Virus record (IMG/VR): IMGVR_UViG_3300042484_002457
Location: 1-64,000 of that record
Direction: 5' to 3' (one strand)
DNA: 64,000 nt
Position 1 is the first letter of the stretch. The number at the start of each line of letters is the position of its first letter. Positions 18,915 to 53,861 of this stretch are shown piece after piece. The notes under the pieces are model-generated. The model was not told where the DNA came from. It saw nothing but the letters and a program-made list of their open reading frames with translations, and searched no databases. The position numbers and the translations under genes are program-made.

Positions 18915-20380
18915 AACAAGCAACCATTGTTATCCGCGACGAAGTAAACATCAAAATTGAGGGCTTGGATCTTGACATGCGCAAGCGCCTGGTCACAGCA
19001 TTCAAATACGAAAACCCTGCCGCACGTTACATGCCAGCGGTGCGTCTAGGAAGATGGGACGGCAAGATAGCATACTTCCAGTTAGGAGGCAGTACCTACA
19101 CAAACTTGCTACCTGAAATCATTCCCATCCTTGAGAAGTTTGATTATGATATTGAACTGGATGACCAACGCGACTATTCAAACACTTTTAACTTTGAACA
19201 GGTACGTGAGGATTCATTTGCACATGTGAAGTGGCCCAAAGGACACCCTGCCACAGGTGAACCCATAATGATGCGGGACTACCAGGTTGAAATCGTAAAC
19301 AACTTTTTAGCCAATCCGCAATGCCTGCAAGAAGTAGCAACAGGTGCAGGTAAAACAATCATGACAGCGGCCCTGAGCAATGCAGTTGCACCTTATGGGC
19401 GAAGCATTGTGATTGTGCCCAACAAGAGTCTAGTAACACAAACAGAAAAAGATTACATCAACATGCAACAAGATGTTGGTGTTTATTTTGGCGATAGAAA
19501 AGAGTACGGCCGCACTCACACTATTTGCACCTGGCAGAGTTTGAATATCTTGTTAAAGAATACCAAGGCAGGGGTAGGCGACTGTACCATTGGTGAGTTC
19601 CTTGAAGGCGTTGTATGTGTTATTGTAGACGAAGTACACATGGCCAAGGCAGATGCACTGAAAACTCTGCTGACAGGTGTAATGGCTAGAGTGCCAATTC
19701 GCTGGGGTTTGACCGGAACTATTCCCAAAGAGAAGTTTGAGAGTCAAGCATTGTTAGTAGGACTTGGTCCTGTAGTTGGTCGCTTGAGTGCCAACGAACT
19801 GCAACAGCAAGGTGTTTTGGCCAACTGTCACGTGAATATTGTGCAACTGGTAGATCATGTGGAGTACAAAGAATATCAAAGCGAGCTTAAATACTTGCTG
19901 GAAGAGTCGGGTCGTTTAGACACCATGGCTGAACTTATACGCAAGGTAAACGAAACTGGAAATACGTTGGTGTTGGTTGACAGAGTTGCGGCGGGCCACG
20001 CATTATTAGAACGCCTAGGCGATTGTGCTGTGTTTGTATCGGGCGCAACAAAAGGAACAAAAAGACAAGAAGAATATGACAAAGTTGCGGACAGCGTTGA
20101 TAAGATTATTGTGGCTACCTATGGTGTTGCCGCTGTGGGCATTAACATCCCTAGGATTTTTAATCTGGTTCTTATTGAACCTGGAAAAAGTTTTGTCCGT
20201 GTTATCCAAAGCATTGGCCGCGGCATAAGAAAAGCAGAGGACAAGGATCATGTTCAAATTTGGGACATTACCAGTACCTGCAAGTTTGCCAAACGTCATT
20301 TGACCAAACGCAAGGCCTTCTATAAAGAAGCTAACTATCCTTTCTCTGTAGAAAAGCTGGAGTGGATGAAAATAGCATAA
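18911..20380 (+). CDS. uvsW: UvsW-like SF2 DNA helicase
   Basis: RDYQ, ATGAGKT, DEVH, GLTGT, VGINIP, QSIGRGIR. Confidence 0.92.
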   Translation: MKQATIVIRDEVNIKIEGLDLDMRKRLVTAFKYENPAARYMPAVRLGRWDGKIAYFQLGGSTYTNLLPEIIPILEKFDYDIELDDQRDYSNTFNFEQVREDSFAHVKWPKGHPATGEPIMMRDYQVEIVNNFLANPQCLQEVATGAGKTIMTAALSNAVAPYGRSIVIVPNKSLVTQTEKDYINMQQDVGVYFGDRKEYGRTHTICTWQSLNILLKNTKAGVGDCTIGEFLEGVVCVIVDEVHMAKADALKTLLTGVMARVPIRWGLTGTIPKEKFESQALLVGLGPVVGRLSANELQQQGVLANCHVNIVQLVDHVEYKEYQSELKYLLEESGRLDTMAELIRKVNETGNTLVLVDRVAAGHALLERLGDCAVFVSGATKGTKRQEEYDKVADSVDKIIVATYGVAAVGINIPRIFNLVLIEPGKSFVRVIQSIGRGIRKAEDKDHVQIWDITSTCKFAKRHLTKRKAFYKEANYPFSVEKLEWMKIA

Positions 20381-21191
20381 GTTTTTTGCAGTTATCACCA
20401 TGCCAGCGATTGTAATTTGACTGTCCCCCAACTATACTAACGCAATGCGGGCACTTAAATTTAGGCTTTGGTCCTTGTAGTTTAGCAACTGTTTCTGCGG
20501 AATGTGCAACTCCTCGGTTGTGCGCAGGCTTACCTACTAACCAAGTTGGCGTCTTCCCTTTTTTAGCGTCAGACATTTTTTGTCTCGATTCAACAGTGTG
20601 CGTGGTTGTTTTTCCTTTGTTACCAGCAGATATCTTTTGTTTTGTTTCTTCTGAATGTCGATAGTGCTTGCGTGATTCTAAAATTTTAGCAACTGTTTCG
20701 GGAGAAGTAATTTTACCTTTATGTGCTGCTGACAATTTTTGTTTTGCTTCGGCAGAATGTGTTTTTCCTTTAAAAGCTGACAGCCTGCCTGCGCAAGATT
20801 TAGACAGTTTTTCTCTTGTCTCTTTGGATACAGTTTTACCTTTGTGCAATTGTGATGAGTTTTTTGCCACTTCTATCTTGGCAAGATTGAAAGCACTTCC
20901 TTTGGATATTTTTCTTTGTTGGGCAACATTTTTTGTTCTTAACATCATCCACAGTGCATACCACATACTTTTTGTATGAGCAGGATCAATGGTCATCCGA
21001 GGTAATAAAATATGAACAAGGCGATGTTCTTTTGCAGTAAGTCTTATTAGATTATTTTGATCATTTGCCCCACCTAGACTTTTTGGGATAATGTGATGTT
21101 TTTCTGTATAAGTTTCTTTTGGCAAATCTCTTGACTTTGCACGATTAATGATGCTATAATAACATTTAGTATATTTGTTTTGTAAATACAT
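20331..21191 (-). mobile_element. Free-standing HNH homing endonuclease with NUMOD3 repeats and C-terminal Zn ribbon
   Basis: EKHHIIPKSLGG.N...NL..LT.KEH...H; repeated H(S/T)xE(T/A)+xK+S; CPHC...RWHGDNC; antisense to the operon. Confidence 0.85.
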
Positions 21192-21260
21192 GGCTGATAG
21201 TTCCTTGTAAACTGTTAGAGTCAATGGATCCTGCAAGATCGCGATTGACATTTTTATTTA
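21192..21260 (-). promoter_or_regulatory. Conserved two-hairpin endonuclease leader, copy A, with TAAATA promoter
   Basis: TAAATA-AAAAT-GTCAAT-CGC-GATC-ttgcag-GATC-C-ATTGAC-TCTAAC-AGTT-tacaagg-AACT-ATCAGC-C-ATG. Confidence 0.8.
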
Positions 21261-21775
21261 TGACGGAGAAAAAAATTCGGATCCTCACACTAGACAACAG
21301 TCACTACGACCTAGATCATCTGCCTGAAGAAATTGATGACATGCGTTTTGCTATCTTGGACAACAGCAATCCTGCAGATCCTGATTATCTTTTTATCCCG
21401 CTAATTTTTCTAGAGAGTTTTAACAGCCCTGCTTTGGTACTGCGCATTGGTACACAAACAATCAAGATGCCCATGGATTGGCAGGTACTAATTGGTGAAC
21501 CTGATGTAGGCGATCTAGAAGTGTTACCACTGACATCAATCAACGATCGCGGCTTTAAAGTATTTCAATTCAATCCCCTTACCAGCTATCGCCCCAGCTT
21601 TCCTGACATTGAAATTTTAGATGTGTATCATGATGTTTCATGGTACGCACCCAAACTCAAGAACGGACAAATGCTAGCAGTACCCATTAACGATGAACCT
21701 GAACCTGACTGTATCTATTTTGTAAAAGACGTCAGCCGCAACTGCGAAATTGTCAACTACAACAAGGCTTGGTGA
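21260..21775 (+). CDS. Conserved-looking phage hypothetical protein
   Basis: RILTLDN...MRFAILDNS...FIPLIFLESF; start taken at ATG 21260. Confidence 0.7.
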   Translation: MTEKKIRILTLDNSHYDLDHLPEEIDDMRFAILDNSNPADPDYLFIPLIFLESFNSPALVLRIGTQTIKMPMDWQVLIGEPDVGDLEVLPLTSINDRGFKVFQFNPLTSYRPSFPDIEILDVYHDVSWYAPKLKNGQMLAVPINDEPEPDCIYFVKDVSRNCEIVNYNKAW

Positions 21776-44659: not shown

Positions 44660-45760
44660 ATGTCAAAACAACAATATGATTTAAAAACAAAAACAGACTA
44701 TCTCAATAGAAAGATGTTTCTAGACCCAGCAGGGCCAGTTACCATTCAACGATTTGAGGAGGTTAAATATCAGAAACTAGTCAAGTACGAACAAGAAGCA
44801 CGTGGCTTCTTCTGGGTACCAGAAGAGATCTCATTAACCAAAGACTCACAAGATTTCAAAGACGCTAGTGATACTGTCAAGCACATCTTTACATCAAACT
44901 TGTTACGCCAAACTGCCTTGGACAGTTTGCAAGGACGTGGTCCCAGCCAAATCTTTACACCTGTTGTTTCAATTCCTGAACTGGAAGCCTTGGTCTACAA
45001 CTGGACATTCTTTGAAACAAACATTCACTCACGCAGTTACAGTCACATTATACGTAACATCTACAACGTGCCCAAGGATGTGTTTAACACCATCCATGAC
45101 ACACAAGAAATTGTGGACATGGCCAGTTCAGTTGGCAACTACTACGAAGCATTGCACATGGTCAACTGTCGTAAGCAACTAGGCGAGTCTGTTACAGAGC
45201 ACGAACATATTCGAGCAATCTATATGGCTCTACATGCTAGCTATGCGCTAGAAGCATTCCGCTTCATGGTTAGCTTTGCCACAAGTCTTGCCATGGTAGA
45301 GAATCGCATCTTTATGGGCAATGGTAATATTATTGGGCTAATCTTACAAGACGAGATTCTGCACAAAGAATGGACAGCTTGGTTGATCAATCAAGTGGTC
45401 AAAGAAGATCCGCGCTTTGCCAAGGCCAAAGTAGAATGTGAAGCTGAAGTGTACCAGATGTACTTGGATGTGATCCGTGAAGAAAAAGCCTGGGCTGAAT
45501 ACTTGTTCAAGAAGGGTCCAGTTATTGGTCTTAATGCAAATATTCTTAAAGACTTTGTGGACTACACAGCAGTAGGTGCACTGAAAGAAATTGGCATCAA
45601 GTATCTTGAGCCTGCTCCGCGTAACACACCAATCCCGTGGTTTAACAAGCATGTGGACACAAGCAAGAAACAATCGGCCTTACAGGAAAACGAATCAACC
45701 AATTATGTAATTGGAGCGATGAGCGAGAATATTGATTACGACGAGTTACCAAATCTATGA
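44660..45760 (+). CDS. nrdB: Ribonucleotide reductase class Ia beta subunit
   Basis: FFWVPEE, LDSLQGR, ETNIHSRSY, LEAFRF..SF, DEILH, QE.E...Y. Confidence 0.96.
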   Translation: MSKQQYDLKTKTDYLNRKMFLDPAGPVTIQRFEEVKYQKLVKYEQEARGFFWVPEEISLTKDSQDFKDASDTVKHIFTSNLLRQTALDSLQGRGPSQIFTPVVSIPELEALVYNWTFFETNIHSRSYSHIIRNIYNVPKDVFNTIHDTQEIVDMASSVGNYYEALHMVNCRKQLGESVTEHEHIRAIYMALHASYALEAFRFMVSFATSLAMVENRIFMGNGNIIGLILQDEILHKEWTAWLINQVVKEDPRFAKAKVECEAEVYQMYLDVIREEKAWAEYLFKKGPVIGLNANILKDFVDYTAVGALKEIGIKYLEPAPRNTPIPWFNKHVDTSKKQSALQENESTNYVIGAMSENIDYDELPNL

Positions 45761-46053
45761 TATTGTCAAGACTGGAGTTTATAGATTACTTCAAAACTTT
45801 AGACTCCAGGATTGACGGCAACGATCCTGATTGTCCGCTGTGGATACCCGAGCATGATAGCAAACCATCTAGTTGGTTTGTGCGAGTAGTACCCATTAAG
45901 GCACATAGATTCAAGCGGAAATATTACGATTGGTGCAACAACACACTAGCAGATGTTGTTCGCTGTTATAGCAGTGATCCAGACCACCAACAAGAGTGGT
46001 GGGGATTTACCAATCAAAAGGATATTGTACCATGGTTGTTAAAGTGGTCTTAA
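45757..46053 (+). CDS. Hypothetical protein
   Basis: 98 aa, ATGA overlap with nrdB. Confidence 0.6.
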
Positions 46054-46689
46054 AATCCATCCTTTAACAACTTTGCGTTTTGCCTTAACTAAGTTGTTCA
46101 CGCCGCCACTGTCGAGCTTATATGTAGTTCGAAAGTCATACTGAGTCATACTAACTTCCTCGTTGGTGATGGTATTAAAGAAACAATATATAGTATGATC
46201 ATACCGTACACTGCCTGAACCAGTATATAATTTGCGATATAGATCTTTGTTTTTCTGACTGTGCCCCGGATTAGCAGGCCCGGACATACGTAAGCTAGCA
46301 GACAGATTAGTACGACCAAGCAAAGATGTGCTAGTATTTGGGCGTTTTTGTCCTGTTTGTTTTTTTATGTTTATAGCAACACGATGGGCGATTTGTTCTT
46401 TAGTTTGTTTCATCCCGCAAGATCCGTCGCCGCCGTTTGTTTTATTTCGAAGAATACCTGTGCCAATATCTTTGCGACCATACCAGCGTATCATCCTGCG
46501 TTCAATAGCTAACGCACCAACATCGGTTAGATTACTTTCAAGTATTATAATTCTTGAACGATCAACTGGAGGATGAACTTCGCCTTTTCCTTTGATCCAG
46601 GCTCGACGATCTTTGCCTTTTCCTATATAATAAGGAGTTCCGTCTTCTCGCAAATATGCATAGACGTAAAAATTGTTAGTTAAATACAT
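46039..46689 (-). mobile_element. Free-standing GIY-YIG homing endonuclease
   Basis: [34 protein letters not shown](D/E)G; antisense to the operon. Confidence 0.85.
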
Positions 46690-46756
46690 TGCTGATGTTC
46701 CTCCAGAACGTTAGAGTAGTTGGGAACGCCAATTCCGCGAACTACACCTATATTTA
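46690..46756 (-). promoter_or_regulatory. Conserved two-hairpin endonuclease leader, copy B, with TAAATA promoter
   Basis: TAAATA-TAGGT-GTAGTT-CGC-GGAA-ttggcg-TTCC-C-AACTAC-TCTAAC-GTTC-tggag-GAAC-ATCAGC-A-ATG. Confidence 0.8.
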
Positions 46757-46773
46757 TGAAAGAAAATAAAAAT

Positions 46774-46998
46774 ATGACAAAAGCTATAGTCTGGAGCAAG
46801 GACGGTTGTAGCCACTGCGTTCAAGCCAAGAGTCTATTAGAGAGCCGCGGTATTGAATATGAAGAACGCAATGTAAGCCAGGACTGGACCCGAGAACAAC
46901 TATTAGAAGCTGTACCAACAGCCCGAACACTTCCGCAAATCTTCTTGAATGAAGAACATGTGGGCGGATTTACAGAACTCAGAAAGAAACTAGCATAA
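46774..46998 (+). CDS. Glutaredoxin
   Basis: CSHC, TLPQIF, VGGF.EL. Confidence 0.92.
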   Translation: MTKAIVWSKDGCSHCVQAKSLLESRGIEYEERNVSQDWTREQLLEAVPTARTLPQIFLNEEHVGGFTELRKKLA

Positions 46999-50796: not shown

Positions 50797-52173
50797 ATGA
50801 TTAATGAAATTGACTTTAGCAACAATCGGTTTGAGGGTGTAATGGCCGCAGGATGGATCCGCGATCTTGAATCCAGCGACAGTAGAATTCACAAAGAAAA
50901 AACAATTGAAAAAGCCTTGATGGCTGCAAAACTGGGCAGTACAGACGCACAGATTTTCTTGTTCAACTGCTATCAGGCCTACAATCCTTTCTACACATTC
51001 AATGTGCGGCAAGTGCCAGAAACGTCGGATCTAACTGGCCGCGACAATCCTTGGCCAGTGTTCTGGGCCTTGTTGGAAAATCTACGCACCCGTGGTATCA
51101 CAGGACACCGTGCTCGTGATCGTATTCAAGAAGTAGCTGAACAGTTTGACTCAGACGAGTGGAATAACTTGGCCCGCAGAGTGATCATCAAAGATCTGCG
51201 TTGCGGCATCAGTGAAAAAACCATCAACAAAGTTGTAGGCAACACAGAGTGGCGGATCCCGGTGTTTAGTGTGCAGTTGGCTCAGGACAGTGCTGGACAG
51301 CCCAAAAAGATGAAGGGTATCAAGCGCCTGGAGGTCAAACTAGACGGCGTTCGTGTGGTGGCTGTGGTACAGGGCGATGTTTGCACACTGTACAGCCGCA
51401 ATGGCAAGGTGTTTGAAAACTTCCCGCAGATTGCTGAAGCCATTGAAGCCAACCGCAAGGCGTTTCAATACGGTCGCGGCACCGGTGGCCAATTTGTACT
51501 GGACGGTGAAATTGTGGGCGAGAGCTTTCAAAAGCTCATGAAACAGGCACATCGCAAGAGTGATGCCGAAACTTCGGGTATGGTGTATCATATTTTTGAT
51601 GTGTTGCCCCTGGATGCACTCAAAGAAGGTCATTGGAATGTGAAACAACAAGCTCGCCTGGAATGGTTGGACAGTGCCAAATTGGCCTTAGAAGAGACTG
51701 ACAACCTGCGAATTATGCCGGGCATGGATGTAGACTTGGACACAGCAGAAGGACATGACATCATGCGCCGATTTGCTGAAGCATCAGTGAAACAGGGCTA
51801 CGAAGGCATCATGATCAAGAATCTGGATGCACCTTATCTCTGCAAGCGTAGCGATTCATGGATGAAATGGAAACCCACCATCACTGTGGACTTGACCATT
51901 GTGGGGTTTGAAGAAGGCACTGGTCGCAATGAGGGTCGGTTGGGTGCTATAATTTACGAAGGAGTTGACAATGAACGAAATATTCGGGTTAATGTTGGTA
52001 CTGGTTATAGTGATAGCGATCGTGATGAGTTTTGGGCTGCACGGCATCGGCTACTTGGTGTCATCGGTGAAGTTGAAGCTGATGCAGTTACGCAAAACCA
52101 AGACGGAACATACTCACTAAGATTCCCCCGTCACAAACGATTCCGTGGATTTGAACCTGGAGAAAAATTATGA
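50797..52173 (+). CDS. ATP-dependent DNA ligase
   Basis: KLDG, SRNG, LDGEI, IFD, EGIMIK, W.KWK, SLRFP. Confidence 0.93.
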   Translation: MINEIDFSNNRFEGVMAAGWIRDLESSDSRIHKEKTIEKALMAAKLGSTDAQIFLFNCYQAYNPFYTFNVRQVPETSDLTGRDNPWPVFWALLENLRTRGITGHRARDRIQEVAEQFDSDEWNNLARRVIIKDLRCGISEKTINKVVGNTEWRIPVFSVQLAQDSAGQPKKMKGIKRLEVKLDGVRVVAVVQGDVCTLYSRNGKVFENFPQIAEAIEANRKAFQYGRGTGGQFVLDGEIVGESFQKLMKQAHRKSDAETSGMVYHIFDVLPLDALKEGHWNVKQQARLEWLDSAKLALEETDNLRIMPGMDVDLDTAEGHDIMRRFAEASVKQGYEGIMIKNLDAPYLCKRSDSWMKWKPTITVDLTIVGFEEGTGRNEGRLGAIIYEGVDNERNIRVNVGTGYSDSDRDEFWAARHRLLGVIGEVEADAVTQNQDGTYSLRFPRHKRFRGFEPGEKL

Positions 52174-52400
52174 GCAAACGCATTGGACCTATTACATTGG
52201 ACGGCGACGCAGCTGATCGCATCACTGTGCTCACGCTGAAAGAACAACGATCCTACCTCAAGAAAGAACTTGCAGAGTGGAAGAAAAATCCACGTACAGA
52301 TACCAATCCTGAGGGTGTTTGGATGCACCCTGAAGACGTGGAACTCAACACTCGCATGATTGAATCGTTGAACACTGTGATCAAATACTTTGGCGGATAA
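52170..52400 (+). CDS. Hypothetical protein
   Basis: 76 aa, coupled to the ligase. Confidence 0.65.
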   Translation: MSKRIGPITLDGDAADRITVLTLKEQRSYLKKELAEWKKNPRTDTNPEGVWMHPEDVELNTRMIESLNTVIKYFGG

Positions 52401-53034
52401 ATGAACAACGATCAAAGTGCCAACGAGTCATAGCAGATATTCCTCCAGTTTTGCTGCAATGCGGGCAAGTGGCTAATGGTTTAGATTTTCCTCTATTGCT
52501 ATTACCAATTTTTTCTTTTGTTTCTTCAGAAATAACTTGCAACGATCTTGCCGCCTTAATTTTTTGTTTAGTTTCATTGGTATGAGCTCGGTGGTGTCCG
52601 GTCCCTTTTCCAGTTCTTCCTTTGCTAATTTTTATCCTATCACCAACTGATCGAGTCTTGCCTTTCCAGAAACCAACTGCACCCTTGTGTCCTTTGTTCG
52701 GAGGGGGTCGTCCAAGCCCTGCAATAGAAATCTTATTTCTTGATTCGGCGCTTAATTTTCCTCGGGCATCACCAGTTTCTTCTTTAAGATTAGCCCATTC
52801 ATTGCTTTCGACTATATTCCAAAGATTACTATAAAACAATCCCCAGTATGAAAATTCATCTTTAGTATGACACTCTTTTATAATTTCTGTGCGATAATCT
52901 TTTCCGTGTTTTTTTAAATGTGATTTCCAATAAGTGCCTGATCCAGGATACTTGTGAGGATCTTTTGACTCGGTCTTGCCAAGATATTTGAGACCAGTAA
53001 CATTGTGGGTTTTGACGTACAGGTAAATAGTCAT
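52381..53034 (-). mobile_element. Free-standing GIY-YIG (Seg-like) homing endonuclease with NUMOD3 and C-terminal Zn ribbon
   Basis: IYLYVKTH..TGLKYLGKT, Y.GSG.YW..HL.KHG, WANL.EE.G; CPHC...RWHFDRC; antisense to the operon. Confidence 0.85.
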
Positions 53035-53103
53035 GCTGATTGCTCCTTGTTAGCGTTAGAGTAGTTGGGGAGGTGAGATACCCGCGAACTACACTTCTAT
53101 TTA
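53035..53103 (-). promoter_or_regulatory. Conserved two-hairpin endonuclease leader, copy C, with TAAATA promoter
   Basis: TAAATA-GAAGT-GTAGTT-CGC-GGG-tatctcacct-CCC-C-AACTAC-TCTAAC-GCT-aacaagg-AGC-A-ATCAGC-ATG. Confidence 0.8.
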
Positions 53104-53107
53104 TCTC

Positions 53108-53136
53108 TTGACTTTAATCTACGTGTTGTGTATAAT
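53108..53136 (+). promoter_or_regulatory. sigma70-like early promoter
   Basis: TTGACT-N17-TATAAT. Confidence 0.8.
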
Positions 53137-53163
53137 GTAAGTTCAAACATTGAAAGGCATGTT

Positions 53164-53562
53164 ATGCGTATAGGATTGAGTCTTAGTCGTTGCGTTCGCG
53201 ATATTGTTGAGGGTCAAGTCAACATTGATGATGTGTTGATACTGATCACTCGCACTGACTTTGACCCTACAGTTCCGGAACAATGGGACAGCATTTGGGA
53301 TGGGTACACCTCAATGAATCCTGAGTGGTACGGCCTGGAGCATGACGCTGTGTACGCAGTTGTTATGAAGTTGTGGTCCACTGGTCGCATTCATCAACCC
53401 CGCAAGTTTGGATATAATCCACCTCGCCGGCGAGAGTTTTGGCTGGAAACTGTGTTGCCTGATTCAGAACTGGCGTCGCGTCCTGCTGTGAAAGAAGCTT
53501 GGGATCAGTTTCAAATGCTAGCCGGTCTTACCAACACCAAACTGGACAAGAACTATCAATGA
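53164..53562 (+). CDS. Hypothetical protein
   Basis: MRIGLSLSRCVRDIV...GRIHQPR.FG. Confidence 0.7.
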   Translation: MRIGLSLSRCVRDIVEGQVNIDDVLILITRTDFDPTVPEQWDSIWDGYTSMNPEWYGLEHDAVYAVVMKLWSTGRIHQPRKFGYNPPRRREFWLETVLPDSELASRPAVKEAWDQFQMLAGLTNTKLDKNYQ

Positions 53563-53861
53563 ACTACGAACATATCGGTTGGTGTCGTGAAGGTACCTCT
53601 GACAAAGTATGGGGAGCTATCTGTTTGAGTCACTCAGGGACATCCTATGGTGACAACAAGTATGTTACCTTTTGGGGTCGCCGTGGTAAAAAACTTCAAA
53701 CTAAAATTGTTGAAGGTAATAACTGGACAATCAATTTGATGTTTATTAAGAAACAAGACAAGGGATACGTTTCAGTTGATATCAAAAGACTCAACGAAGT
53801 GTATCCAGAGTTCCAACAAGATTTAGAAAAGACTGCCTTCTGGGCAACATTACGAGCATGA
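53559..53861 (+). CDS. WGR-domain-like protein
   Basis: SDKVW...FWGRRG...K..KGY. Confidence 0.65.
   Translation: MNYEHIGWCREGTSDKVWGAICLSHSGTSYGDNKYVTFWGRRGKKLQTKIVEGNNWTINLMFIKKQDKGYVSVDIKRLNEVYPEFQQDLEKTAFWATLRA

Follow-up and report, generated by a model that had tools for sequence, protein, structure and literature searches.

Free-standing homing endonucleases of T4-type phages, encoded by seg and mob genes, join a GIY-YIG or HNH catalytic domain to NUMOD3 and zinc-finger DNA-binding modules. They insert between conserved genes, are present or absent among relatives, use late-type promoters, are tightly controlled and often decay to pseudogenes. In T4 e, I-TevI, mobE and segB, late promoters are placed in hairpins that sequester the ribosome-binding site, and T4 endonucleases are under late-promoter and RNA-structure control (PMC3014915). 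In the T4-like cyanophage S-PM2, whose late promoter is NATAAATA, the antisense RNA CfrI overlaps a homing endonuclease gene (PMC2984593). IS10 RNA-IN/RNA-OUT and type I toxin-antitoxin antisense RNAs rely on face-to-face promoters flanking the 5′ end of a gene for a DNA-cutting or toxic protein, with a short stable hairpin RNA complementary to the 5′ UTR, Shine-Dalgarno site and AUG. Finally, PeSLs of T4-type phages are conserved promoter-plus-stem-loop cassettes of about 100 bp attached to accessory genes, and have been proposed to carry regulation with the gene and to mediate shuffling (PMC2839356, PMC4122927). How phages tolerate many selfish nucleases in one genome is only partly understood, and controls such as late promoters and hairpins sequestering the ribosome-binding site are specific to single genes.

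We analysed a stretch of 64,000 nucleotides (the window), positions 1 to 64,000 of the 209.5-kb IMG/VR virus record IMGVR_UViG_3300042484_002457. A sequence-only reading had noticed in it three antisense endonuclease genes (copies A, B and C), each behind a TAAATA box and a common leader and ending inside a convergent host gene. Copy C occupies 52381–53103 and consists of a minus-strand SegD-like GIY-YIG endonuclease gene of 217 aa behind a TAAATA box (53103–53098) and a 63-nt leader. The features of the three loci are as follows.

52381–53034, minus strand: homing endonuclease gene C, with an N-terminal Seg-type GIY-YIG domain, NUMOD3 repeats and a C-terminal CxxC...H...C zinc finger; the last 7 codons and the stop (52381–52400) are antisense to ORF76.
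53098–53104, minus strand: ATAAATA box, a T4-type late-promoter-like element for the endonuclease mRNA, with a predicted +1 at G 53092.
53061–53092, plus strand: hairpin 2 (P1/P2), of 6 bp, one G-C pair and 3–5 bp, with two invariant bulges, selected on the strand opposite the endonuclease gene.
53036–53059, plus strand: hairpin 1, CUGAU.../...GUUAG with an invariant G.U pair and CUCCUU (anti-Shine-Dalgarno) in its loop; it forms only on the plus strand and is the complement of the Shine-Dalgarno region and of the invariant AUCAG and CUAAC.
53023–53029, plus strand: GTAAATA box inside endonuclease codons 2–4, the putative late promoter of the antisense RNA, with a predicted +1 at G 53035.
53035–53104, plus strand: predicted cis-antisense small RNA of about 70 nt, inferred from sequence alone, made of hairpin 1, hairpin 2 and the U-rich tail ACUUCUAUUUAU (53093–53104).
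53032–53048, minus strand: Shine-Dalgarno AAGGAG (53048–53043), invariant CAGC (53038–53035) and start codon ATG (53034–53032) of the endonuclease.
52401–53163: inserted segment at site C relative to empty-site alleles, in which the ORF76 stop codon is directly followed by the ORF144 ATG.
53108–53136, plus strand: sigma-70-type promoter TTGACT-N17-TATAAT for ORF144, immediately after the cassette and inside the inserted segment.
52170–52400, plus strand: ORF76, the conserved host gene whose 3′ end supplies the endonuclease stop codon.
53164–53562, plus strand: ORF144, the conserved downstream host gene, whose first three codons differ from those of empty-site alleles.
20331–21191, minus strand: endonuclease gene A (HNH, NUMOD3 repeats and zinc finger), whose last 16 codons and stop are antisense to the uvsW 3′ end.
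21183–21261: cassette A, with box ATAAATA at 21261–21255 (minus), hairpin 2 at 21220–21249 and TATTTA at 21188–21183 (minus), which reads TAAATA on the plus strand.
46039–46689, minus strand: endonuclease gene B, GIY-YIG-like by motif only (YVYAYL...PYYIGKG) and without a Pfam match.
46681–46757: cassette B, with its box at 46757–46751 (minus), hairpin 2 at 46716–46745 and TATTTA at 46686–46681 (minus).
45761–46758: inserted segment at site B between nrdB and the glutaredoxin gene, containing orf98 (45757–46053, plus), endonuclease B and the cassette.
20381–21274: inserted segment at site A between the uvsW stop codon and orf171, whose native ATG reads ATT at 21275.

The observation made from the sequence alone proved correct. 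The leader motif occurs exactly three times in the window, without mismatch and always on the minus strand (21240–21260, 46736–46756 and 53083–53103), and the downstream motif CCANNNACTCTAAC marks the same three places. The overlaps with the convergent plus-strand ORFs are exactly 50 nt (20331–20380), 15 nt (46039–46053) and 20 nt (52381–52400), as had been claimed. The complement of the promoter, TATTTATG, is present on the plus strand at 21255–21262 and 46751–46758, with its ATG in frame with the next plus-strand ORF. A matches Pfam HNH and carries NUMOD3, which is also found in C, and the two proteins share the C-terminal NUMOD3 repeats and the CxxC...RWHxDxC tail (E 9e-11). For C, Pfam SegE_GIY-YIG scores only E 0.034, but the protein is about 30% identical over its full length to T-even SegD, matches phrog_314 at 3e-13, and its AlphaFold2 model (pLDDT 82) has the I-TevI catalytic domain (1mk0 and 1ln0) as top PDB hits, with probability 1.0 and TM 0.66. 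The similarity of the leaders is far beyond chance. A covariance model finds exactly five copies in the whole record, all on the minus strand in front of endonuclease genes. Some qualifications are needed. The automatically called start of A (21251) lies inside the leader, the real start being ATG 21191, and orf98, the ‘host gene’ overlapped by B, is itself absent from empty-site relatives. The two copies outside the window, D and E, have their own stop codons, which abut the host stop by 1 and 0 nt.

The interpretation attached to this observation, minimal promoter-leader-ORF units inserted at gene junctions without stop codon or terminator of their own and swapping domains, is supported only in part. 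Empty-site alleles that already contained the leader, or boundaries unrelated to the motif, would have spoken against it. Such alleles exist in related phage contigs for all three sites, C (contigs L132, L133 and L139), B (L140 and L173) and A (L212 and L222), and none carries a cassette at the junction, whereas one boundary of the insertions sits at or near the TAAATA box and the other right after the zinc-finger tail. For A and C, the last codons and the stop are antisense to host sequence that pre-exists in empty alleles. Flank identity at site C is mosaic and drops from about 93% to about 80% within roughly 250 nt of the insert against L133, which is only indirect evidence of co-conversion. 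The sharing of DNA-binding modules between HNH and GIY-YIG proteins is also confirmed, although this modularity is already known for homing endonucleases. On the other hand, the lack of an own stop codon is not general, since B ends inside a non-conserved ORF that is part of the insert and D and E have their own stops. The ATG supplied by the promoter complement is plausibly used in A, where the native ATG is ATT, but it is not needed in B: from the empty alleles, the conserved glutaredoxin start is the downstream ATG 46774. Moreover, the unit does carry a terminator-like hairpin with a U tract, but at its 5′ end and on the other strand, and the element is not simply an mRNA leader.

The leader belongs to a widespread, apparently undescribed cassette of about 85 bases. 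Two pattern scans of viral contigs, each returning at least 120 rows, gave at least 173 distinct cores, and the ORFs behind them are NUMOD3, HNH, HNH_3, GIY-YIG or TnsA-like proteins, or homing-endonuclease PHROGs. The cassette precedes endonucleases of at least three unrelated nuclease families. Rfam gave no match at gathering score on the window and none at E <= 1 on the five loci. Megablast and blastn of the locus against cultured phage records gave no match, nor did blastn of the cassette alone. Of nine pattern hits in bacterial genome contigs, three did not match the covariance model and were set aside as chance.

The conserved structure of the cassette is selected on the strand opposite the endonuclease. 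On the endonuclease strand, 9 of 11 pairs covary, but 54 cells are A.C against 7 G.U; among 52 distinct outer-helix arm pairs, the counts are 283 Watson-Crick, 28 A.C and 1 G.U. On the opposite strand 98.7% of those cells are standard pairs, and RNAalifold finds two hairpins there de novo. On that strand 96.4% of cells pair, against 31–51% in slid controls, with 328 double-change cells, and none of 500 shuffles reaches the covariation score, although the variants are related by descent and these counts overstate the number of independent events. The invariant CUCUAAY and AYCAGC of the ‘leader’ pair with each other only on the opposite strand, where one G.U pair is invariant in 84 of 84 sequences; this helix is 8–9 bp in 86 of 129 variants there but breaks after 2 bp in 129 of 129 on the endonuclease strand. 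The A.C mismatches are equally frequent where neighbouring genes are divergent (36 of 97) and co-oriented (22 of 57), so that the opposite-strand function belongs to the cassette and not to host transcripts.

A second TAAATA box, facing the first, is constrained at the nucleotide level. TATTTA follows CAGC at 4–6 nt in 148 of 153 cases, while its offset from the ATG takes all three frames. In 93 M-x-I-Y starts, the second codon ends in T 93 of 93 times across 11 codon types, against a 48% background, and Ile is ATT in 92 of 93. For GIY-YIG proteins part of this signal coincides with the catalytic I-Y motif, and one HNH gene of this genome without the hairpin also begins ATGTATTTA; however, we rejected the I-Y motif as the sole cause because of the synonymous-site constraint and because HNH starts carry TATTTA in other frames. 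Its presence does not clearly depend on the orientation of neighbouring genes (90% in divergent contexts, 79% in co-oriented ones). The inner box is the full ATAAATA in only about 69% of variants, being GTAAATA in A and C, TTAAATA in B and ATAAGTA in E. As for the outer box, NATAAATA is invariant and the sequence upstream of it is unconserved, but cassettes found by the model without the fixed pattern show that it also varies to CTAAATA or GTAAATA, the core being therefore TAAATA. A protein search did not find T4 gp55 in the record itself, which is only 58% complete, but all four complete relatives encode a gp55-type late sigma factor, and TAAATA lies 5–80 nt upstream of ORF starts in 48 of 107 cases, against about 4% expected.

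The tail after hairpin 2 has 7–8 U in 12 nt, most often ACUUUUAUUUAU, and the spacer is strand-asymmetric (A 385, T 100, C 7). The predicted RNAs of copies A, B and C fold as two hairpins plus a free tail, with z-scores of −2.0 to −3.5. Hairpin 2 is only moderately stable (mean −10 kcal/mol) and interrupted by bulges. A simple terminator scan did not flag it, which is weak evidence only since the rules of the scan exclude bulged stems.

We suppose that copy C is a free-standing Seg-type GIY-YIG homing endonuclease gene, antisense between two conserved phage genes and driven by a portable cassette which, in a large clade of uncultivated jumbo T4-related phages, precedes endonucleases of unrelated families. 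In this view, two late promoters facing each other about 70 bp apart would start the endonuclease mRNA and, from within codons 2–4, a small RNA of about 70 nt on the opposite strand. This RNA would have a 5′ hairpin with an anti-Shine-Dalgarno loop, a second hairpin, and a U-rich tail, the complement of the endonuclease promoter, which together with the second hairpin resembles an intrinsic terminator. Fully complementary to the 5′ UTR, Shine-Dalgarno site and start codon, it would pair with the endonuclease mRNA and limit its translation or stability, as RNA-OUT does for IS10 transposase. Our analysis establishes the insertions, the nuclease identity, the conservation, the covariation, the strand on which structure is selected and the nucleotide-level constraint on the inner box, whereas it is by inference that both boxes fire, that the small RNA is made, that the hairpin with its U tract terminates transcription, that the RNA represses the endonuclease and that the nuclease cleaves the empty allele and is copied into it. 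G.T pairs being also tolerated in single-stranded DNA, an RNA is not proven. We hold this explanation, the best at hand, to be about as likely as not.

Alternatively, the cassette could be only a 5′ UTR, as the sequence-only reading implied, with a late promoter followed by a 5′-terminal stabilising hairpin or protein-binding operator and by a small hairpin presenting the Shine-Dalgarno site; in a T4-style variant, read-through transcripts would be silenced by pairing of AUAAAUA with the UAUUUAU that follows the AUG. The predicted +1 is indeed the first base of the hairpin, hairpin 2 also folds on this strand, the inner 3–5 bp around the Shine-Dalgarno site covary with some sense-strand G.U pairs, and T4 offers the precedents cited above. 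A 6–7 bp pairing of the two boxes is possible, but the positions flanking them show no covariation. The excess of A.C mismatches and the helix that cannot form on this strand argue against this reading, and since most copies are antisense to all their neighbours, read-through transcripts that need silencing would be rare. We consider it unlikely.

It is also possible, though again unlikely, that the opposite-strand hairpin and U tract form a terminator or insulator for host-direction transcription and that the inner box is a late promoter for the downstream host gene, a PeSL-like device letting an antisense insertion sit between transcription units without harm. About 60% of copies are antisense to both neighbours, and a sigma-70-type promoter follows the cassette in the host direction in 23 of 97 divergent contexts, copy C included, against 3 of 57 co-oriented ones; empty alleles of site A have TTGACT-N17-TAAAAT at that junction, and PeSLs combine stem-loop terminators with promoters (PMC2839356). 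Yet the same structure and A.C tolerance are kept in co-oriented contexts, where no host transcript runs on that strand, hairpin 1 with its anti-Shine-Dalgarno loop has no role in a terminator, the element never occurs away from endonuclease genes in this genome, and a strong terminator would cut off the downstream host genes at sites A and B, which have no new promoter. The least likely alternative in our view is a recombination handle, either shared homology letting unrelated endonuclease ORFs swap or move, as proposed for PeSLs, or a single-stranded DNA hairpin used during repair, the structure being incidental or acting at the DNA level. In its favour, the same cassette fronts unrelated nuclease families, degenerate and deleted endonuclease genes keep it, its distribution among close relatives is patchy (13, 5, 0, 0 and 0 copies) and DNA hairpins tolerate G.T pairs. 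However, hundreds of compensatory changes keep the pairing while the sequence drifts, indicating selection on a fold and not homology alone, and promoter boxes at fixed spacing and a U tract fit transcription units.

More tentatively, the cassette may define a new family of phage-encoded cis-antisense small RNAs, a portable promoter-plus-antisense-brake adaptor that any selfish nuclease gene can acquire in these jumbo phages. As cassettes within a genome share long identical stretches, the small RNAs could also act in trans on each other's mRNAs and, in mixed infections, on incoming endonuclease genes, and so set a genome-wide ceiling on nuclease expression. A single structured module shared by unrelated nuclease families would be a general containment device, of which an antisense RNA is the most likely form, and the same 7 bases would serve as promoter on one strand and as terminator tail on the other, a compact example of two functions in one sequence. 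The cassette also provides a clean, testable RNA motif with more than 170 natural variants and a marker for endonuclease insertions in uncultivated jumbo phage genomes.

The genes described here share with the seg and mob genes, SegD and the I-TevI catalytic domain their domain composition and their insertion next to uvsW, nrdB/glutaredoxin and ligase, but many unrelated endonuclease genes share one conserved structured cassette, most lie antisense to the host genes, and they commonly run tail-to-tail into the neighbouring gene by 0–100 nt. As in T4 gene e, I-TevI, I-TevII/III, Aeh1 mobE and segB, a TATAAATA-like box lies just upstream of an endonuclease gene, RNA structure surrounds the ribosome-binding site and the complement of the box lies next to the AUG; here, however, the conserved helices do not appear to sequester the ribosome-binding site on the mRNA strand but are selected on the opposite one. 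With respect to IS10 RNA-OUT and type I antitoxin RNAs, the arrangement is equivalent at the sequence level only: an opposite-strand TAAATA box facing the target promoter, and two covarying strand-specific hairpins followed by a U-rich tail, a putative terminator. Both boxes are here phage late-type, the U tract doubles as the complement of the target's promoter and the module serves many unrelated nuclease families in phage genomes. CfrI, an antisense RNA of about 225 nt and of unknown function, is a single locus linking the endonuclease gene to psbA, and shares neither sequence nor structure with the cassette. PeSLs have sigma-70 early promoters, poly-G/poly-C stems and ORFan cargo, whereas this cassette has late-type boxes, two covarying hairpins with invariant bulges and endonuclease cargo only, and contains no sigma-70 promoter, one merely adjoining it in copy C and in 24% of divergent contexts.

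The 209.5-kb virus record, of which the window forms the first 64 kb, carries at its minus strand an endonuclease gene (copy C) whose leader is shared by two other genes of the window, copies A and B. The relevant features are the following:
52381-53034, minus strand, 217-aa ORF of copy C
53104-53098, minus strand, ATAAATA box preceding this ORF, followed by a 63-nt leader, AAGGAG and ATG
20331-21191, copy A, an HNH endonuclease gene with the same leader
46039-46689, copy B, a GIY-YIG-like endonuclease gene with the same leader
The copy C protein has NUMOD3 repeats, is about 30% identical over its full length to T-even SegD and falls in a homing-endonuclease PHROG. An AlphaFold2 model built on 25 homologues (pLDDT 82) has the I-TevI catalytic domain as its top PDB matches. 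The overlaps of copies A, B and C with the convergent ORFs, 50, 15 and 20 nt respectively, are exact, and a covariance model finds just five copies in the record, all on the minus strand and all preceding endonuclease genes. Thus, the observation made by the sequence-only reading, of a common promoter, leader and ORF arrangement running into the convergent gene, is confirmed.

To examine the insertion architecture, the ligase and uvsW proteins were used to retrieve hundreds of related viral contigs. At site C, in the closest relatives, the ORF76 stop codon is directly followed by the ORF144 ATG (TAAATG, TAAAAATG or TAACAATG), and window 52401-53163 is therefore an insert. The endonuclease-specific sequence ends at the last zinc-finger cysteine, whereas its last codons and stop are the antisense of conserved ORF76 codons. 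The insert also carries a Shine-Dalgarno site and a new start for ORF144, together with a near-consensus sigma-70-type promoter, TTGACT-N17-TATAAT (53108-53136, plus strand), just before this gene; in related contigs a -35 TTGAC often sits 2-10 nt after the cassette in the host direction. Another small indel lies next to the endonuclease site, since the 100-aa ORF between ORF144 and ORF155 (53559-53861, plus strand) is missing from the closest relative, contig L133.

At site A, empty alleles have the uvsW stop codon, TTGACT-N17-TAAAAT and then ATG. In the window the insert begins right after the uvsW stop, while the endonuclease runs 50 nt into uvsW on the antisense strand. The native ATG of the following gene, orf171, reads ATT in this phage, so that the possible starts (21260-21277, plus strand) are the ATG within TATTTATG, or ATT 7 nt after a GGAG. 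The uvsW-orf171 junction is an insertion hot spot: among the related loci L211-L290 many carry inserts of 0.6-2.2 kb with other content, and only L221 has a homologue of A with the cassette. At site B, empty alleles run from the nrdB stop codon through a Shine-Dalgarno site to the glutaredoxin ATG. The insert (45761-46758) includes orf98 (45757-46053, plus strand), so that the gene overlapped by B is not a conserved host gene. Lying between nrdB and endonuclease B, orf98 has no family match and no homologue in the 80 related loci apart from the identical contig L131, and looks like cargo of the insertion rather than a host gene. The glutaredoxin start is the downstream ATG at 46774. The two remaining copies of the record, D and E, have their own stop codons, which abut the host stop.

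In a survey of the first 103 variants, 42 of 51 convergent cases overlap or abut the neighbouring gene. Among 170 variants the antisense orientation dominates but is not universal, 66 being divergent/convergent and 24 co-oriented on both sides. Flank identity is mosaic near the insert, which is compatible with co-conversion. The interpretation proposed in the sequence-only reading, of units inserted at gene junctions with domain swapping between them, is thus partly supported: its insertion component is largely right, whereas the shared protein modules are ordinary for homing endonucleases. The notable result is instead the conserved cassette and its opposite-strand structure.

The cassette is widespread. 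A pattern built from the five copies gave at least 120 matches in each of two scans of viral contigs, corresponding to at least 173 distinct cores. The ORFs behind the cassette are NUMOD3, HNH, HNH_3, GIY-YIG or TnsA-like proteins, and most fall in homing-endonuclease PHROGs. Among the members of one alignment (A4), two ORFs behind the cassette have a TnsA-like (Tn7) endonuclease N-terminal domain and two match ‘head closure’ PHROGs, which is unusual cargo for such a cassette. Several of these genes are pseudogenes or deletion remnants with an intact cassette (contigs L069, L088, L098, L106, L118, L055; L017/L127; L110:7705-7788): endonuclease genes are broken by frameshifts or stop codons, one allele fuses the hairpin directly to the zinc-finger tail, and another keeps only a 15-codon stub plus a NUMOD3 remnant.

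Among complete relatives of 340-364 kb, one (G003, 360.7 kb) has 13 copies and three (G001, G002 and G004) have none, a very uneven endonuclease load within one clade. The window's own genome (G000) also has endonuclease genes that lack the hairpin cassette, at 68596-69252 (plus), 175727-176419 (plus), 192779-193492 (minus) and 127279-128169 (minus). They have TATAAATA-like boxes close to the ATG, and the one at 127-128 kb has in-frame TAG stops. Neither Rfam nor cultured phage records searched by blastn contain the cassette. Six true cassettes (L400, L402-L406) lie in metagenome bins of unrelated bacteria, labelled Haliscomenobacter, Dechloromonas, Erysipelotrichaceae, Geobacteraceae and Bacteroidetes. 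These are presumably mis-binned phage contigs and consequently give no reliable host clue.

We next asked which strand carries the structure. On the endonuclease strand the hairpin after the box covaries strongly, with 9 of 11 pairs covarying, 311 double-change cells and 94.5% of cells paired against 36-47% when slid. Its non-canonical cells, however, are 54 A.C against 7 G.U, and among 52 distinct outer arms the counts are 28 A.C and 1 G.U. Since A.C on one strand is G.U on the other, the fold is selected on the strand opposite the endonuclease, where 98.7% of cells pair. The hairpin is also more stable on that strand (-10.0 against -8.2 kcal/mol). Moreover, the two invariant single-stranded blocks of the ‘leader’, CUCUAAY and AYCAGC, turn out to be the arms of a second helix that exists only on the opposite strand, reading CUGAU/GUUAG with a G.U pair in 84 of 84 sequences. 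This second helix is 8-9 bp in 86 of 129 variants on the opposite strand, but breaks after 2 bp in all 129 on the endonuclease strand. RNAalifold, run de novo on 84 opposite-strand sequences, returns both hairpins, and in total 96.4% of cells pair against 31-51% when slid. The A.C tolerance is the same whether the neighbours are divergent or co-oriented.

Directly after the start codon lies TATTTA(T), the reverse complement of the promoter box, which sits 4-6 nt from CAGC in 148 of 153 variants. Its offset from the ATG is 0, 1 or 2, as in ATGTATTTA, ATGATATTTAT and ATGACTATTTAT. In 93 M-x-I-Y starts the second codon ends in T every time, across 11 codon types and against a 48% background, and Ile is ATT in 92 of 93; the hexamer is therefore under nucleotide-level selection. 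Cassettes found by the covariance model without the fixed pattern show that the outer box too can read CTAAATA or GTAAATA, so that the core is TAAATA. This core is enriched about 11-fold just upstream of ORF starts in this genome, and complete relatives encode a gp55-type late sigma factor. NATAAATA late promoters are known in T4-like cyanophages (PMC2984593). The T4 late box spans -13 to -6. On that spacing the endonuclease mRNA would start at the first G of the complement of hairpin 2 (the hairpin following the outer box), whereas the opposite-strand RNA would start at the G before CUGAU.

Several explanations could be considered for this organization. A pure mRNA leader does not explain the strand asymmetry, and a mere recombination handle does not explain the compensatory changes. 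A host-direction terminator combined with a late promoter would fit the common antisense orientation and the sigma-70 promoter that follows the cassette in 24% of divergent contexts, but it fits neither the co-oriented copies nor hairpin 1, the CUGAU/GUUAG helix.

The opposite strand reads, in order, TAAATA box, 5 nt, G, hairpin 1 (with CUCCUU in its loop), hairpin 2 and then ACUUUUAUUUAU. This is the layout of a small RNA gene with an intrinsic terminator, whose U tract is the complement of the endonuclease promoter, and the RNA would be complementary to the whole 5′ UTR, Shine-Dalgarno site and AUG of the endonuclease mRNA. We therefore read the cassette as a portable expression module with a putative built-in antisense brake. 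While the conservation and the strand of the fold rest on the sequences themselves, the firing of either box, the termination and the action of the RNA on the mRNA remain inferences. This reading also fits the known need to hold phage endonucleases down (PMC3014915). Among known systems, the alternative terminator and promoter arrangement would be PeSL-like (PMC2839356), whereas the module proposed here resembles IS10 RNA-IN/RNA-OUT, and CfrI of S-PM2 is a precedent for antisense RNA at a phage homing endonuclease gene (PMC2984593).
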